64,000 nt of DNA from Prasinococcaceae sp. CCMP 1430 (taxonomy: Eukaryota; Plantae; Prasinodermophyta), in contig RQSC01000116.1 in assembly GCA_013416795.1 (NCBI GenBank), forward strand, positions 70,363 through 134,362. Direction: 5' to 3'. This document shows positions 55,201 to 62,173 of this stretch, piece after piece. Both the position numbers and the translations under genes were made by a program. Below the pieces are notes generated by a model that was not told the DNA's origin, made no database searches, and saw only the letters and a program-made list of their open reading frames with translations. Each line of letters begins with the position of its first letter. The first letter of the stretch is position 1.

Positions 55201-56787
55201 TCACGCCTCCACGGCCTGCAACAGCAGGGCGTCGAGCTCGCCGCCGTCATCCGAGGTGGCGGCAGGGGACCCGTGGGCGTCCTCGACAGTGACGTGTGCT
55301 TCGAGCACGAGGGCACCGTCGTTGGCGTCGGCAAAGATGCGCGCGGTCGAGTGCGACAGATATTCTGGGAAGCCCCAGTCCTTGCCCTCGGTGAAAACGT
55401 GCTCGCTGGTGAGCACGTGCGACGTCGGAGCCTCGATGCGCAAGAAACCGTTGGCGGCGGGATCATTCGGAGGCCCGTCGCTGCCGCTGCTGCCACCGGC
55501 ACCGTTGCCCGCGCTGCGCGCACCACCGTGGGCGCATTGTACAGGCGCAGCGTGCGAGTCGGGCCCGCCGTCCTCGCCGACCGCGAGATCGCTCTTGACA
55601 GGGAGGCAACCCAGGCGCGAGACGCGTGCAGCGTAGCACTTGCCGCAGAGGTCAAAGTCAGACATGGCAGTGCCCTTGTAGCGCTCGGTGAGGGGGTACT
55701 CCCCGCAGTCGTCGCATGTGGATAGCAGGTGGTACTGCTGCGAAAGCTCAGGCTCCGCGTTGCCGGCCGCGGTGAGCGGCGCGTTGTGGCATACCGCCAG
55801 CGAGAAGAAAGCGCGCACCGGCTTCGCAGCGCCTGCTGCGCGTCTGCGCTCGAATCTGCGCTTGCTCGCGCGCTTGCCCTTGCTCCCGCCCTCGCCCGCG
55901 CCCTCGGTCGCGGGCACCTCTCCGCCGCCGCCGTCAGCAGGTGCCAACCGTTCGAGGAAGAGGGAGATGCAGCTTTCGCCCTGGTCGTCATCTTCCATGA
56001 GCGCGGAGCCCGGGCGCGGTGTCGCGTTGGGATAGAGCACGAGCCGCCAGCGATGGCCGCCCGCGACGAACGGCGGGCTGTGCAGCCGCCTGGGAGCGCC
56101 CTCGGCCTGGATGCGCGCCCCGAAGAAGTCGGGTATGCGCCACTTGAAGCACGAGAGGAAGAACATGAGCGCGCCCGTAACGCGATACCCGCGGTGCACC
56201 CAGTCGCGAGGCGCGATTTGCGCGAGCCGAGGACGGCTGAGCCGCGCCACCCACAGCACGCTGAGCGCGCGCTCGTGCTGCAGCAGCCGCTGCCGCGAGC
56301 CGGTGTGCCACATGCACGCGCACGCAAGTTCGGGCAGGAAGAACTTTGCAGCTGCGGCCGCGCCCTCGATCTGCGCGGCGCGCGCCTCAGCCTCCTCGTG
56401 GCGGTGGTCGCGCGTGCTGCACGCGTGGGCGCCGCTCAGGATGCGCTGCGTCGTCTCGTCGTCGTGCCACACGCGGTCGTCGTTCTCTCCCCCGCAGAGC
56501 TCCTGCCAGAACGCAATGAGCTCGCGCATGCCATCCACGGGGCGCAGAGCAGCCGCGAGCAGCCTGCCGGAGCCCTCGGATGTCTCCTCGCTCCACGCGC
56601 CGCCCGGCAGTAGCGCTGCGCCAGCCACATCGCCGCCGCACCGCAGGAACGCTCGCACAGCGCGCGCCGCCGAGTTGGAGCACAGCGCAAGCCGCGCGAG
56701 GTCGGGGGGATCGAGGAACGAGCACACCGCGAGCGCCACCGGCCCTGCTTCGAGCATGACATCGCCCCAGCTCTGTGTGACGACCAT
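55201..56787 (-). CDS. F-box-like + MATH domain protein with a ZZ-type zinc finger inserted in MATH
   Basis: VCSFLDPPDLARLALCS; FKWRIPDF..SPPFVAGGHRWRLVLYP..ISLFL; CDDC..RYK..DFDLCGKC; KDWGFPEYL..LVLEAHV. Confidence 0.8.
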   Translation of the reverse strand: MVVTQSWGDVMLEAGPVALAVCSFLDPPDLARLALCSNSAARAVRAFLRCGGDVAGAALLPGGAWSEETSEGSGRLLAAALRPVDGMRELIAFWQELCGGENDDRVWHDDETTQRILSGAHACSTRDHRHEEAEARAAQIEGAAAAAKFFLPELACACMWHTGSRQRLLQHERALSVLWVARLSRPRLAQIAPRDWVHRGYRVTGALMFFLSCFKWRIPDFFGARIQAEGAPRRLHSPPFVAGGHRWRLVLYPNATPRPGSALMEDDDQGESCISLFLERLAPADGGGGEVPATEGAGEGGSKGKRASKRRFERRRAAGAAKPVRAFFSLAVCHNAPLTAAGNAEPELSQQYHLLSTCDDCGEYPLTERYKGTAMSDFDLCGKCYAARVSRLGCLPVKSDLAVGEDGGPDSHAAPVQCAHGGARSAGNGAGGSSGSDGPPNDPAANGFLRIEAPTSHVLTSEHVFTEGKDWGFPEYLSHSTARIFADANDGALVLEAHVTVEDAHGSPAATSDDGGELDALLLQAVEA

Positions 56788-57906
56788 GCGCTGGGTGGGC
56801 CACGCTGCGGCTGCATCGCCGCCGCACGCCGCCGTGCTCGCCGCTGCACTGCTGCGCGCGCCGGCGCTCACCGATTACAACAACACCGAGAACTCGACTC
56901 CAGCCTGCTGTCGGCGGTCGCCGTGAAACACACCCTCTTTTACACACCCACCCACCCCGCCACGCGCCGCTCGACGGTGCGGCAGCCGCCGCCTCCGCCC
57001 GTCGTCGCTGTGGCGCCCCGCGCGCATCGCCCGCGCTGCACGCGCCTGCGCTGGAAAGATTTTTTTGCGCGCCTCGCACCGGCCTCGCCTCTCGCTCGCC
57101 TCATCACACGTCACCGTCGTCGCGCGCGCGCGGATTCCGACTCGTATCGGCGCACGCATCCACTCTGCGCGCGGGCCGTTTTTCCCCCCGCCCCGACAAC
57201 CGCGGGAGCGCGAACGAAACGGAACCGCGCGGCCCGCGCCGGACGGGACCGAGCGCATGCCGGCCGGCAGCGCGAATCCGCGGAACGCCCGCGCGCCAAA
57301 CGCGATTCGTCCGCGGATTTCGCCCGACGCCGACGTGGCGCGCGCCACTCATCGCGCCCGGCGTTCGCGCGGGATTTTTGTTCGGCGTCGCAGATCAAAT
57401 CCCCTGCGCGCGAGGACGCCGCGACGCCCGCCCGCCGGGCGGCGAACGGTTTCCTACCTATCGATGAATGAGCGCTCGGTCAGTCGGCGGCGATGGCACG
57501 GACGCGAGATCTTTCCCGCGCGTGCGCAAAAAAAAAAAAAAGGCCCAGAAGGATTTCGTAGCGGTTTGCTCTGCGCAGGGTTCAGGATTCGGACTGAAGG
57601 GGAGTATGATGGTACTCTGACCTGAGCCTTTGAGGCCGCGCTGGAGGCAGGTTCGGGTTTTCATTATATGCTGCCAATTTGATGTGCTTCCCGCGGTTTC
57701 TCTGGGTGAACGCAGTGCGTGCACCCTGGGCGGCGGCGGTTTTCGTGGTCCGGTCCGAGAATTCGAACGGCTCGTGTTCGTAACGAAACGGGAAACGGGA
57801 TCCGGGCGCGAAGCCGCTGCGGACGGCCTGTGGGCGGGCGGGGGAAGAGGGGGGCGCCTGCCTCTCCAGTCCTCATCCGGACAGGACGGCCCCTCGGCGC
57901 GCCTCA

Positions 57907-59893
57907 TCAAGGATACCTCCACTTGTAGCCTGGATCCTTGGTCTCGTCCTTGATGGAATCGAACTGGCCCGCGCGCTCGGCGGCCTCGAAGTGCTCGACG
58001 ATGTCGTCACGCACGCGCGCGAACGCCTCGTCCTGCGAGAGGCGCCCGAACCACTCGGCCAGCTTTGGGAAATGCTCGCGCTCCTCGAATACGCGCGGCC
58101 AGTCGAACACGCGCGGAAGCATGAAGTACATGAAGACGGCCGTCGGGTACCACGTGAAGTCGGCCAACGTGAGCGCCGCGCCCGCCAGGTAGGGGCCTCG
58201 GACCTGCTCCTCGAGCCACTGCAGCTGCTTCCAAATCTCGCGGAGCTTGGCCGCGCGGGTGGCCCTAAACGAGCGGCGCGCGCGCGCCGGCGTTGACGCG
58301 GGCGCGTGAGCACGAGTGTGCGAGCACATGCACGGCGTCGCGCGGCGCAAGGAAGTCGCCGCCCATCCGCGGGCGCGAAGAGCCGCGCGCGCACGCGCGC
58401 GCGCGCGAGCCGCACCTGTCCATCGCACGCCACGGCGGGCAGAACGGTGTCTCGTACGGCGCCAGATACATGGCGCCCTGCGTGTGTGAGAACCCCGGCT
58501 GCGTGGAGTTCGGGCTCGCTATGTACGTGTCGTGAATGCGAATGAGCAGGCGCACCAACGCGCGCTCTTCCGCTGCGCCGGGCGTGAAGCTCTCGGCGGC
58601 GCCCTGTCCCGCGAATTTGTCCTCGAGGTAGTCGAGGATCACCGCGGACTCGATGAGCGGACCCCCGTAGGCGTCGAGCAGTGCCGGCACCTTTCGCAGC
58701 GGGTTGATCCTCCCGAACTCCTCCGTCTGCAGGTCGTCGTATTTGACCATGGTGGTCTGCACAGCGCCCTCGGGCAGCCCCTTCTTGCTCAGCCATAGCC
58801 GCACGCGGGCCGCGTTGTTCGAGTGCTTCATGTCGAAGAAGTGCGGCGGGCGCTCGTGCGCAAAGCTCGCCACCGTGCGCACCTCGATTGAGCGGCGCGG
58901 GCGCGCGTCGGCGGGCGCGGTGGGGTCGCTGAACGCGGTGTGGTACGTGAATCTGGTGCCGTCGTGTTCCGCGGCCTCGCGGCTGTCATACACCTTGAAG
59001 ACCAGCGCCTCGTCCGCAGTCATCTGAGGGTAAAAGAACCACTTGTGGTGGTCCCCGTGCTGCAACGCCAGGTTCTCGCCCACGCGCTCCGGAAATACCA
59101 TCTTGTAAGGGATGGCCTCGCTCGCGCGCACGCTGCGCGCGTCGCACATGGCCAGTGGGTCCTGCTGCACCGGCGCATCGGCATCCACGCTGCGCCACAC
59201 GTTGATGAAGGCGTAACGGCCGCGCAGCACCGCCGCCCGCTCCGACGAATCCAGGGCTGCGCCACCGCCGCTCGCGCCGTCCTCGACGCGCCCCAGCTGC
59301 TCCACAATCTGCCGCAGCCTTGCGGGCGCCGAGGCCGCGCTGTAGTCGCAGTGGACGCGCCGCACGGCCGCCGCAGACTTGGAGGCGTCGCCGAGCACGT
59401 TGAGCGACTGCGCCCCGTCGCCACCAGCGCGAGCCTGTGCGGGTCGGCCCTCGCGCAGCGTGTGGTCGAACACAAGCACGCGCTCGCAGCCGGTGGCCGC
59501 CTTGACGAGCGCCTCGACCTCTGGGTAGTACACCGTGCGCACCTTTGCGGGGTCTCTAAAGTCGTCCGGGCCGCACATGGCGCTGCGCTGCGTGCGCAGC
59601 TCGAACCCGCGCGACTCGAGCGTCGCCTCGGGCACCAGAGCGCGCGCATCGCGAACGCGTACTTTGTGTCGCTCGTGCTCGTCGACGAGGTCTGAGGTGT
59701 CGGCGCCGTCAGCAGGCGCAATGTAGCGTCCGACGGCGCGGCCCGAGCCAGCCGGCGGCGGCGGAGCCTGGTAGTCGAGCTCCGCTAGCACGTCGCGCGG
59801 GCCGCCCGCTCCCGGCGAGGACCCGTTCGAGTAGCGCGCCCGCGCCTGCGCCCCCGGGCGTTCGGGCAGATTTTTTTGCGTCGGTGCGCGCAT
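57907..59893 (-). CDS. CmcJ/AsaB/NvfI-type oxygenase domain fused to glutathione S-transferase; intron 58415-58265
   Basis: TLESRGFEL, YYPEVEALVK, VFDHTLR, VHCDYS, INVWR, PLAMCDARSV, HTAF, RRSIEVR; then SNNAAR, NPLRKVPAL, ESAVI, LTLADF. Confidence 0.85.
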
Positions 59894-59920
59894 CGCTGCA
59901 GCGGAAGGGAGGGCGGCGAG

Positions 59921-62173
59921 ATGGGCTCGGCCGGGCTCGCGCGGGAGCAGTGCGCTAGCGTGCACGCGGCGTCGATGGCGCTGGTCGCGCTCGGTGCTGC
60001 CGCGTTCGTGTCCGCGGCGCTGCACAGGGGCGAGCACCCCGCCTGCGGCGGGGTTGGCAATGCGGCGTGCTTCGACTCCTACGAGCTCTCGCGAGCCCAC
60101 AACGCGACCCGGGCAGCGGTGGCTGACGTGAGCGCCCCCCGCGCTGGGGCGGCGCTCGTCTCGGCGGGTGTGGCGCTCACGTACGGCGTCGGTGGTTCGC
60201 TCTCGCACGGCGCCGCGTGGCGACTGTTCCAGCCCCTCAAGGGGGGCGAACGCTTCGTGATGCTGCAAACAGCCGCGTGGCTCTGCTTTGCCGCTGTGCT
60301 GCTTGCTGCCGCCGCGCCGCGAGCTGTCCTGGGGCCGCTGAGTGGCACGATGCACCTCGCGGGGGGCACAGCGGGCCTCGTGTGTGAGGTCCTCATGTTG
60401 GCGAGCGTGCTATGCTTTGACCGCACCAAGGGTGCCATCATCATCGAGCCGAGGCGCGCGCGGCGCGATCGCCGGCTGAAGCTCGTGGCAAGAGCAGCCG
60501 AGGCGAGGCACAGGCGCGTGCTCAGCGCGGACGCGGACGAGGCGCTGCGCACGGGCGGCAGGTTCCCTCGCGCGCGCGCCGTGCTCGTGGCCGCGTGCCA
60601 TTTGCTCGCGGTCGCGGCCGCCGCGCTGCTCGTGTGTGCAGCGCGAGCGAGCGTCGTCCCCGACCCTGGCTTTCGCATGCCGGTGCGGCCGTGGGTGAGT
60701 GCTGGGATGGCCGCGGCCACCATGCTCGTCGCCCTCACGATCACGCACGGCCTCGTCGGCTGGCTGCGCTATCGAGATGGCTGGGCGGGCTTTTTCCAGC
60801 CCTTTGCGGGAGGCGCGCACTACGTGTTGTGCCAGATTCTGGCGTGGACGCTCGCCTCCGTCTGCCTTTGCGCGCTCGCGGCCGGGGCCACGACGGCGAG
60901 GCCGCACTCGGCGCTCATGCTCGCGGCCGCGACGGGGTTGCTCAGCGAGGTGGCGCTGGCTGCCAGCCTCGTGTACTACACGCCGACGCACCGCGGTGAG
61001 CTGCCGAAGCCGGGCGGGGCCCGTGCCCGCCCGCAGCTCGGCCTGGGCGCCGCACTCGCTCGCGCGACGAGGGTGGCGATCGCATGGAGCGCTGTGTGCG
61101 CGTTGTACTCGTCGCCGTACGCCGCCATGTTCGTTTTCATCGGGCCGCTGCTGGTTCTTCCCCCATCGACGTCGCTGCCTCTCGTCGCGGTGATGGCGGC
61201 GACGTACTTTCCGGCCGTACTTATGTCGACGGCGCCGTCGACCGGGGCTCGCGAGTGGCCGTGGCTGCAGGGCGTCATAGGCGGATGCTTCGACGCCGCC
61301 GCCGAGTGCTACTTCGACGGAGTGCACGTCGTGCGCGTGCCGGACGCGCCATTGCAGTCCGGCGCGGGCGCGGATGCGAGCGCCGCCCTCGACCGCGGCG
61401 AAGGGATGGCGGGCGCCCGCCCGCCGGCGCCGATCGGAGAAGCGCCTCTTCCCGACCAAGCCATTTTTGGCTTTCACCCACATGGGCTGTTGCCGGCGAC
61501 GGCGGCATGGTTGAAAATGACGTCAGCGTGGAAGCGAGCGGTCCCGGCGTCTTCGCCGCCCGTCACTCTGGCGGCCTCGCCACCATTCGCTGGACCCATC
61601 CTCCGAGACCTGCTGTGTTGGGGCGGCGTGCGCGAGGTGAGCTCGCCCAGTTTCTCGAGGGCGCTGGATGAAGGCCGGTCGGTGCTGCTGTGTCCCGGTG
61701 GGCAGACCGAGCTCTTGATGCAGAGTGCACGCGACCCCGGCGACGGCTCCACCGAGATGGTTCTGGACGCAAGCCGACAGGGATTCCTGCGCAAGGCCAT
61801 CGAGGCGCAGGTGCCGGTCATACCAACGTTCGTCATCGGCGAGCGCCTCCTTATCCACAACCTCATCGTGGTGCGCTGGCTCCAGAAGCTCGCTTATCGT
61901 GTGATTGGCTTCCCCATCCCTTTCGTCCCCGTCGGCATGGCAGGCGTGCTCCCTTTCCCGCGTCGGACCCGGATGATCGCTCTGGTCGGCGACCCTTTGT
62001 ATCCACCCCCGCCCCCAGCGGACGCTGACAGCTTGGCGGCGGCCATTAAGGTCATGCACACGGCGTACTACGACCGCCTCGAAAGCATGTATGCCGCACA
62101 CGCGCACCTCAACGCGCAGCAGCCCCTCAGGCTGGTGAGAGACAAGGCGTCGCTCGAGGAGGAGCTGCGGTGA
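59921..62173 (+). CDS. DGAT2: DGAT2/MGAT-family acyltransferase with a long multi-TM N-terminal extension
   Basis: FGFHPHG (61475-61486), PILRDLLCWGG, LCPGGQTE, RQGFLRKA, PVIPTFVIGE, VGDP. Confidence 0.85.
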   Translation: MGSAGLAREQCASVHAASMALVALGAAAFVSAALHRGEHPACGGVGNAACFDSYELSRAHNATRAAVADVSAPRAGAALVSAGVALTYGVGGSLSHGAAWRLFQPLKGGERFVMLQTAAWLCFAAVLLAAAAPRAVLGPLSGTMHLAGGTAGLVCEVLMLASVLCFDRTKGAIIIEPRRARRDRRLKLVARAAEARHRRVLSADADEALRTGGRFPRARAVLVAACHLLAVAAAALLVCAARASVVPDPGFRMPVRPWVSAGMAAATMLVALTITHGLVGWLRYRDGWAGFFQPFAGGAHYVLCQILAWTLASVCLCALAAGATTARPHSALMLAAATGLLSEVALAASLVYYTPTHRGELPKPGGARARPQLGLGAALARATRVAIAWSAVCALYSSPYAAMFVFIGPLLVLPPSTSLPLVAVMAATYFPAVLMSTAPSTGAREWPWLQGVIGGCFDAAAECYFDGVHVVRVPDAPLQSGAGADASAALDRGEGMAGARPPAPIGEAPLPDQAIFGFHPHGLLPATAAWLKMTSAWKRAVPASSPPVTLAASPPFAGPILRDLLCWGGVREVSSPSFSRALDEGRSVLLCPGGQTELLMQSARDPGDGSTEMVLDASRQGFLRKAIEAQVPVIPTFVIGERLLIHNLIVVRWLQKLAYRVIGFPIPFVPVGMAGVLPFPRRTRMIALVGDPLYPPPPPADADSLAAAIKVMHTAYYDRLESMYAAHAHLNAQQPLRLVRDKASLEEELR

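Follow-up and report, generated by a model that had tools for sequence, protein, structure and literature searches.

The locus described here raises the question of whether two enzymes of known families, an Fe(II)/2-oxoglutarate oxygenase and a glutathione S-transferase (GST), are joined in one algal protein, and what the two would do together. It lies on the minus strand at positions 57907-59893 of a stretch of 64,000 nucleotides (the window, to which all coordinates refer) from Prasinococcaceae sp. CCMP 1430, taken from contig RQSC01000116.1, positions 70,363 to 134,362. An original prediction, made from the letters alone, had described it as one uninterrupted frame in which a CmcJ/AsaB/NvfI-type oxygenase runs into a GST, had placed it in secondary metabolism as an enzyme that oxidises and then glutathionylates, and had called it the best candidate for an undescribed system in the window. 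Here, we report that the feature is one nuclear two-exon gene of Prasinoderma coloniale, and that the enzyme which it encodes is almost certainly bifunctional. On balance, we lean towards a role, catabolic or detoxifying in nature, in which oxygenase and GST catalyse adjacent reactions of a single small metabolite and the glutathione thiolate is used catalytically.

Gene structure

The GC content of the window is high (62-73% throughout, 59% in the final 2 kb) with 68-70% GC in the DNA around the gene, and long open reading frames (ORFs) occur in all frames, so that an open frame alone is little evidence for a gene. The minus-strand frame beginning with the ATG at 59893 has no stop down to 58265; this ATG is the first one in frame, and the ORF around it (58265-60355) contains no ATG further upstream. 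Neither a stop nor a splice signal is found at the junction of oxygenase and GST near 58860, and here the original prediction holds: the frame reads through into the GST. What it missed is a 151-nt intron (58415-58265) that interrupts the coding sequence within the GST, whose C-terminal domain lies in a separate frame (ORF 57907-58428).

Only splicing at this intron (58265-58415, minus strand) brings the two ORFs into a common frame. The intron is of the GT...AG type and in phase 2, lies inside the GST helical domain and splits an Arg codon (AG/G). Exon 1 (58416-59893, minus strand) comprises codons 1-492 and two bases of codon 493 in open frame; it encodes an N-terminal extension, the oxygenase domain, a linker and, of the GST, the N-domain together with the initial helices of the C-domain. 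The rest of the C-terminal helical domain is contributed by exon 2 (57907-58264, minus strand) with 118 codons and a stop at 57907-57909. A motif conserved across the splice junction is continuous in 59 GST homologues, and the predicted product of the two exons has 611 amino acids.

The exons were searched separately, with a public gene model that uses the same splice, P0002 (EukProt PRCOL_00000709-RA, Prasinoderma coloniale), as a proxy for the joined protein. Over the length of P0002 exon 1 is 100% identical to it, and exon 2 is 100% identical to its residues 389-506; as both exons are matched at 100% with a single residue between them, the splice must be shared. P0002 begins only at an internal Met, and the first 105 residues counted from the ATG at 59893 (region 59578-59893) are absent from it; among them are R84, G96 and F97, which are nearly invariant (98-99%) in 111 oxygenase homologues. 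The public model therefore appears to be N-terminally truncated.

A second entry, P0001 (ENA, 643 amino acids), stems from another assembly and probably from another Prasinoderma strain. It is 99-100% identical with few substitutions, and its N-terminal 40 residues are different and longer. P0001 translates straight across the intron and represents a prokaryote-style gene call on genomic DNA.

The oxygenase domain

The first domain (58862-59788, minus strand, residues ~36-344) is an Fe(II)/2-oxoglutarate oxygenase of the CmcJ/NvfI/AsaB family, in accordance with the family named originally. The NCBIfam model NF041278 ('CmcJ/NvfI family oxidoreductase') scores 246.3 bits at residues 67-344, with a cut-off of 80, and sequence matches in the PDB are CTB9 (7eus) and NvfI (7de2) with E ~1e-14. 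In the precomputed Pfam listing, orthologues carry PF27522 together with GST domains.

Both parts of the metal site pointed out in the first reading, an HCD motif and a distal His in HTAF, are present and nearly invariant. The predicted proximal metal ligands, H181-C182-D183 (59345-59353, minus strand; HxD), align with V-H-C-D-H of NvfI, and H318 (58940-58942, minus strand), the predicted distal ligand within Y-H-T-A-F, aligns with the His of A-H-C-A-F. Among the 111 oxygenase homologues, H181 is conserved in 100% and D183 and H318 in 99%. Further downstream, an RxS motif (R333-R-S335, 58889-58897, minus strand) is aligned with R-E-S-I-D-V-R of NvfI; R333, S335, E337 and R339 are 99-100% conserved in the same homologues. 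We take the RxS motif to hold the C5 carboxylate of 2-oxoglutarate, as expected for the superfamily. Judged by these alignments, the predicted catalytic residues of the HxD...H triad and the RxS motif are intact.

The fold was assessed on an AlphaFold2 model of the Pycnococcus orthologue P0004, which is 50% identical in the oxygenase domain (predicted local distance difference test 88.9, predicted template modelling score 0.76). Compared with 7de2, 7emz and 7eus, this model reaches template modelling (TM) scores of 0.77-0.87 with E ~1e-24. Its oxygenase half gives TM 0.85-0.87 on NvfI and 0.77-0.79 on CTB9, and the model thus predicts a double-stranded beta-helix fold like that of these two enzymes. 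A search of the ESM Atlas yielded no match for P0004 and generic GST clusters only for P0116, a standalone algal GST.

NvfI is an endoperoxide-forming enzyme whose iron has been placed on residues 135, 137 and 250 (PMC8292354). The text of that paper gives the iron triad as 'His135-His137-Asp250', while the aligned NvfI sequence reads H-C-D at the first site and has a His at the distal one; the residue names in the sentence therefore seem to be swapped.

The GST domain

Both parts of a soluble GST, a thioredoxin-like N-domain and a helical C-domain, are recognised by Pfam models above cut-off, which confirms the proposed identity of the second domain. The N-domain (58607-58837, minus strand, residues ~353-429), encoded in exon 1, is matched by GST_N_3 (45.3 bits), GST_N_2 (43.7) and GST_N (34.1), and the C-domain part in exon 2 by GST_C_2 (33.9 bits), GST_C (33.0) and GST_C_3 (23.5). 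The GST half of the P0004 model has TM 0.64-0.82 on many GST structures.

The residues of a glutathione site can be read from the sequence: S358 (58820-58822), the cis-Pro P403 (58685-58687) and E415-S416 (58646-58651), all on the minus strand. S358 is the candidate catalytic Ser and stands where the first reading had placed it. At least 90% of 59 GST domains retain the surrounding H-S-N-N-A-A-R, the motifs V-P-A and E-S and, within the helical domain, a long motif. The long helical motif is specific to the family and suggests one defined substrate.

Among solved GSTs, the best sequence matches are of the zeta class (mouse GSTZ1 2cz2; 4px1, 2v6k), with E 1e-11 for the standalone relative P0066. 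In this relative the matching Ser falls on the S-S-C motif of mouse GSTZ1, at its first Ser, and the Arg-x-Arg after the Ser, the cis-Pro and the Glu-Ser align as well. The zeta signature S-S-C-x-W-R-V-R-I-A-L is replaced by H-S-N-N-A-A-R-V-R-L-W-L, in which the first Ser and R-V-R are kept while the second Ser and the Cys are invariantly Asn-Asn. Structural comparison singles out no class: an uncharacterised GST of Leptospira ranks first, ahead of epsilon, zeta and phi GSTs. By sequence, the domain is a Ser-type, predicted glutathione-binding GST that falls into no named class and lies nearest to zeta and theta.

An assignment as zeta-class isomerase was considered and rejected, since it misses both the signature motif and the cut-off of the maleylacetoacetate isomerase model TIGR01262; P0036, P0004, P0116 and P0066 score 31.8-53.3 bits against a cut-off of 171.

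Distribution of the fusion among algae

A word-based search with exon 1 returned 1448 relatives, and architectures were read among the best 120 by local BLAST of three pieces of the gene against them. More than 50 clusters among these 120 contain both domains in 480-730 residues. The order oxygenase-GST is found in ~24 clusters (Prasinoderma, Pycnococcus provasolii, Pelagophyceae sp. CCMP2097, Aureoumbra lagunensis, Aureococcus anophagefferens and the cryptophyte Proteomonas sulcata), and the order GST-oxygenase in ~33 (Prymnesium parvum, Phaeocystis rex, Thalassiosira profunda). The hosts thus comprise green algae, cryptophytes, haptophytes, diatoms and pelagophytes, and all named ones are marine phytoplankton. 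Fused mRNAs exist in other species in both orders, as MMETSP transcripts marked as complete ORFs attest.

These data settle how far the locus can be called an undescribed system. The architecture is already present in public databases, in at least five algal lineages, and is therefore not specific to the window, although it is uncharacterised: the entries are labelled only 'hypothetical protein' or, automatically, 'Glutathione transferase'. It is a new architecture of known families and not a new kind of system. Our literature search found no paper on a fusion of a CmcJ-type oxygenase with a GST, and the InterPro and PANTHER codes appeared in maleidride reviews only.

The distribution also bears on the concern that the fusion might be an artefact of the gene model, with two adjacent genes transcribed separately. 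The imperfect, N-terminally truncated public model PRCOL_00000709 would be consistent with such an error. Yet no stop separates the domains, which are only about six codons apart, the same architecture recurs in complete transcripts of other species and in NCBI gene models, and the length of the linker is identical in the nearest relatives, all of which makes an artefact extremely improbable. The profile scores, together with the more than 50 orthologous fusions, exclude chance as an origin of the joined domains. The linker itself (58841-58861, minus strand) has neither stop nor splice signal; it measures ~6 residues in the window gene and its nearest orthologues, and 3-15 residues in most others, irrespective of domain order.

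Besides the fusions, both domains occur as separate algal proteins. Standalone oxygenases (P0054, P0055 and P0058, the last clustering with a Karlodinium protein) are 48-49% identical and are the nearest single-domain relatives, bacterial ones having ~40-43%; standalone GSTs (P0066, P0116) are 62-64% identical. The presence of fused and separate forms is a classic sign of joint function. From the tree point of view, oxygenase and GST domains share several identical subclades. Strongly supported branches of the GST tree require at least three changes of domain order, and a single GST-first clade was rejected by the approximately unbiased (AU) test (p = 2.8e-5), for which the group was defined by architecture and which was run after the tree was seen. 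Hence, the order has changed, or the fusion has arisen, more than once.

The window protein carries an N-terminal extension of ~35 residues before the conserved core (59789-59893, minus strand) with six Arg/Lys versus two Asp/Glu. Orthologues with complete N-termini have extensions of 20-50 residues which are rich in Arg, Ser, Ala and Leu and almost free of acidic residues. The extension precedes whichever domain stands first, and it contains no hydrophobic signal peptide. In algae with secondary plastids, such a pattern suggests mitochondria. By its composition, the extension is thus a possible organelle presequence of mitochondrial type.

One GST-first fusion with a shortened oxygenase, P0073 (NCBI MDA8539150.1), is annotated as 'bacterium' and comes from a 14-kb contig of a metagenome bin. 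As it groups with the algal GST-first proteins, it may represent eukaryotic DNA in a bacterial bin.

A sister group with a tautomerase in place of the GST

In two relatives, P0061 and P0063, an oxygenase of the same clade is preceded by a domain of the tautomerase superfamily (Pfam Tautomerase_2, 85-86 bits). Over its full length this domain can be aligned with the malonate semialdehyde decarboxylases of two organisms (2aag, 3mjz; E 1e-17 to 1e-21), and the counterparts of their Asp37 and Arg75 are retained. The proteins begin with Met-Pro, so that the catalytic Pro1 is available and there is no presequence. A search restricted to the domain brought up 12 tautomerase-oxygenase clusters of 433-460 residues (P0061, P0063, P0139-P0148), one of which is a complete MMETSP transcript. 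The N-terminal Pro1 tautomerase domain is confined to these relatives and is not part of the window gene.

In the oxygenase tree, P0061 and P0063 stand beside the GST-first protein P0047 (SH-aLRT, the Shimodaira-Hasegawa-like approximate likelihood ratio test, 92). From this position it appears that the GST was exchanged for an enzyme acting on a three-carbon beta-oxo acid. The oxygenase of the tautomerase fusions is 43-45% identical to that of the window, and the partner is N-terminal, as it is in the GST-first fusions; they differ in having a Pro1 tautomerase/decarboxylase instead of a GST and in their missing presequence.

Proposed function

Zeta/theta-like GSTs and tautomerases resembling malonate semialdehyde decarboxylase favour small unsaturated, halogenated or beta-oxo acids. 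The tautomerase as an alternative partner and the proximity of the GST to the Ser-type zeta and theta classes therefore suggest chemistry on a small unsaturated or beta-oxo acid. Three features speak for a conserved step of catabolism or detoxification instead of a natural-product pathway: the fusion is widespread among algae, its N-terminal extensions resemble presequences, and its domains also occur unfused. In the role we favour, the metabolite would probably be a relative of malonate semialdehyde, either an unsaturated or a beta-oxo carboxylic acid. Hydroxylation or desaturation of this small acid would fall to the oxygenase, and the GST would apply the thiolate of bound glutathione to the substrate or product, in an isomerisation, a dehalogenation or a transient thiol adduct. 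Glutathione may then serve as a recycled cofactor.

The framing in terms of secondary metabolism, with which the analysis started, finds less in its favour. In it, the oxygenase would activate a carbon atom in the precursor of a secondary metabolite for permanent addition of glutathione by the GST, forming a C-S bond or a detoxification conjugate. Such a sequence has a precedent in gliotoxin synthesis, where the P450 GliC and the GST GliG oxidise and then glutathionylate. It would also be consistent with two intact, tightly linked domains and with the relatives NvfI and CTB9, both of which are natural-product enzymes. A lineage-specific biosynthetic gene, however, would not be expected to recur, with N-termini resembling presequences, in five or more algal lineages that are distant from one another, or to exist also as separate oxygenase and GST proteins. 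Its partner is moreover replaceable by a decarboxylase/tautomerase for three-carbon acids, and the two nearest ORFs checked, one DGAT-like and one with MATH and ZZ matches, include no biosynthetic genes. Nothing favours oxidation followed by glutathionylation in the form originally stated. We consider this explanation unlikely, and a permanent conjugate in a natural-product pathway less likely than catalytic use of glutathione.

Another possibility is that the GST is a mere helper which reduces a hydroperoxide or endoperoxide made by the oxygenase, protects the iron site, or provides only dimerisation or ligand binding. Ser-type theta-like GSTs are often peroxidases, and GSTs are obligate dimers. 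The endoperoxide formed by NvfI (PMC8292354) likewise fits such an assistance. We give it little credence: the glutathione-site residues and the substrate-side helical motif are conserved in at least 90% of the 59 sequences, the GST domain is more conserved among relatives (55-68% identity) than the oxygenase (40-50%), and the swap for a decarboxylase-like tautomerase would be left unexplained.

Several observations count against the proposed catalytic use of glutathione on a small acid as well. Every oxygenase of this family that has been characterised has a large secondary metabolite as its substrate. Exon 1 reaches 32.8 bits with TIGR01262 and stays far below the cut-off of 171, so that isomerase chemistry is an analogy and not a matter of membership. 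The tautomerase fusions are devoid of a presequence and may thus work in another compartment, on another step or on another substrate. The fused mRNA of Prasinoderma itself is a prediction, made from the open frame, from P0002 and from what transcripts show in other species. Single-domain relatives of the oxygenase are encoded at no fewer than 596 bacterial loci, and in the best 80, where neighbouring ORFs were called and clustered, no generally conserved neighbourhood was found, the best recurring neighbour being present in 13 of the 80. Finally, the pairing of GST and oxygenase genes in Nostocales, described below, counts as one lineage.

Bacterial relatives and their gene neighbourhoods

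The recurring neighbours among the 80 bacterial loci are luciferase-like monooxygenases (13 loci), GSTs (11), short-chain dehydrogenases (10) and TauD-like proteins (8), besides flavin monooxygenases of the NtaA/DmoA family and aldo-keto reductases. Single loci contain an SsuA-like binding protein with a permease, or a TauE sulfite exporter. Taken together, these neighbours give a weak hint of small-molecule, partly organosulfur, scavenging.

At 11 loci of Nostocales type, a GST gene is located directly upstream of the oxygenase homologue on the same strand, and at three of these a TauD-like dioxygenase follows directly downstream. A trio of GST, CmcJ-like and TauD-like genes is found in L045 (7227-9809) and L073 (7101-9801); the GST/CmcJ-like pair occurs also in L011, L016, L027, L035, L036, L040, L050, L070 and L078. 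The unit looks like an uncharacterised operon of a GST and a CmcJ/NvfI-family oxygenase. As independent evidence from gene order for a functional coupling, it likewise links a GST to an oxygenase of this family. It differs from the algal protein in that the genes are separate, the GST belongs to a different type, with an SspA-like best match, and the oxygenase falls into the bacterial clade. The Nostocales GST is not orthologous to the algal GST, with no BLAST match between them at E < 1e-5. In L035, the oxygenase is followed by a major facilitator superfamily transporter, two dehydrogenases and the TauE sulfite exporter.

The sulfur-related neighbours bear on a further route in which the GST would act first. 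Its target would be a small electrophilic compound, for instance a halo-acid or a Michael acceptor of acrylate type, which would receive glutathione. Hydroxylation by the oxygenase, at the carbon adjacent to sulfur, would give a hemithioacetal that collapses and frees glutathione and a 3-oxo acid such as malonate semialdehyde; decarboxylation of the latter would be the task of the tautomerase-fused relatives. This chemistry mirrors that of taurine dioxygenase. A single route would in this way cover the GST, the oxygenase and the malonate-semialdehyde-decarboxylase-like domain; some bacterial homologues adjoin genes of C-S cleavage or sulfonate use (TauD-like, NtaA/DmoA, SsuA-like, TauE), and marine phytoplankton are the only named hosts of the fusion. 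The case is entirely circumstantial, though, with sulfur-type neighbours in a minority of the 80 bacterial loci. We know of no such C-S cleaving reaction in the CmcJ/NvfI oxygenase family, and our literature search found no paper linking dimethylsulfoniopropionate, malonate semialdehyde and 2-oxoglutarate enzymes. We regard this order of events as improbable.

A bolder extension, to be taken as a long shot, would make the fusion and its tautomerase sister parts of an unrecognised phytoplankton route that disposes of acrylate-type or 3-substituted propionates by a glutathione-recycling, O2-dependent cycle of C-S cleavage. Candidates for disposal would be breakdown products of dimethylsulfoniopropionate, thioethers and halo-acids. 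Here too the GST would add glutathione and the oxygenase would hydroxylate the S-adjacent carbon; glutathione and malonate semialdehyde would be released, and decarboxylation would follow.

Comparison with known systems

The closest characterised enzymes are NvfI, the endoperoxidase of Aspergillus novofumigatus (7de2), and CTB9, the cercosporin dioxygenase of Cercospora (7eus). They share with the algal oxygenase the family, the fold (as seen on the orthologue model), the HxD...H triad and the RxS motif. They are ~23-26% identical, consist of a single domain, are fungal, and act on large meroterpenoid or perylenequinone intermediates, whereas the algal protein is fused to a GST, is extended at its N-terminus and has been conserved among many marine algae. 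With zeta-class GSTs, the GST domain has the Ser, the Arg-x-Arg, the cis-Pro and the Glu-Ser in common; it differs in having S-N-N for S-S-C and in its own helical motif.

Fungal pathways to epidithiodiketopiperazines use GliC/GliG-type pairs, with a P450 as the oxidase and with the two enzymes encoded by separate genes of one cluster. The likeness is one of logic only, an oxidase followed by a GST, and none of our tests ties the algal protein to that chemistry.

From a biological point of view, fusions reveal cooperating enzymes; what is tied together here is a GST and a member of an oxygenase family so far known only from pathways to antibiotics and fungal toxins. The recurrence of this tie in both orders across five algal lineages points to a conserved and previously undescribed metabolic step of marine phytoplankton, for which the N-terminal extensions suggest a mitochondrial location. 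Should the substrate be a bulk algal sulfur or halogen compound, the step would be relevant for marine sulfur or halocarbon cycling. With another substrate, it would still be the first primary-metabolism-like role for the oxygenase family, together with a new and narrowly specific class of GST. For experimental work, specific proteins and a few candidate substrates are now at hand.

Neighbouring genes in the window

The downstream neighbour on the same strand (55201-56871, minus) has weak matches to MATH (31.5 bits, just below the cut-off) and to a ZZ zinc finger (27 bits). On the other side, a long plus-strand ORF (59876-62173) is arranged head to head with the fusion gene. Its final third contains a DAGAT domain (residues 530-745; 59.5 bits in Pfam), and we refer to the ORF as diacylglycerol acyltransferase (DGAT)-like. 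The mechanically called start of this ORF overlaps the ATG at 59893, and the 5' ends of the fusion gene and the DGAT-like gene are therefore very close or overlapping.

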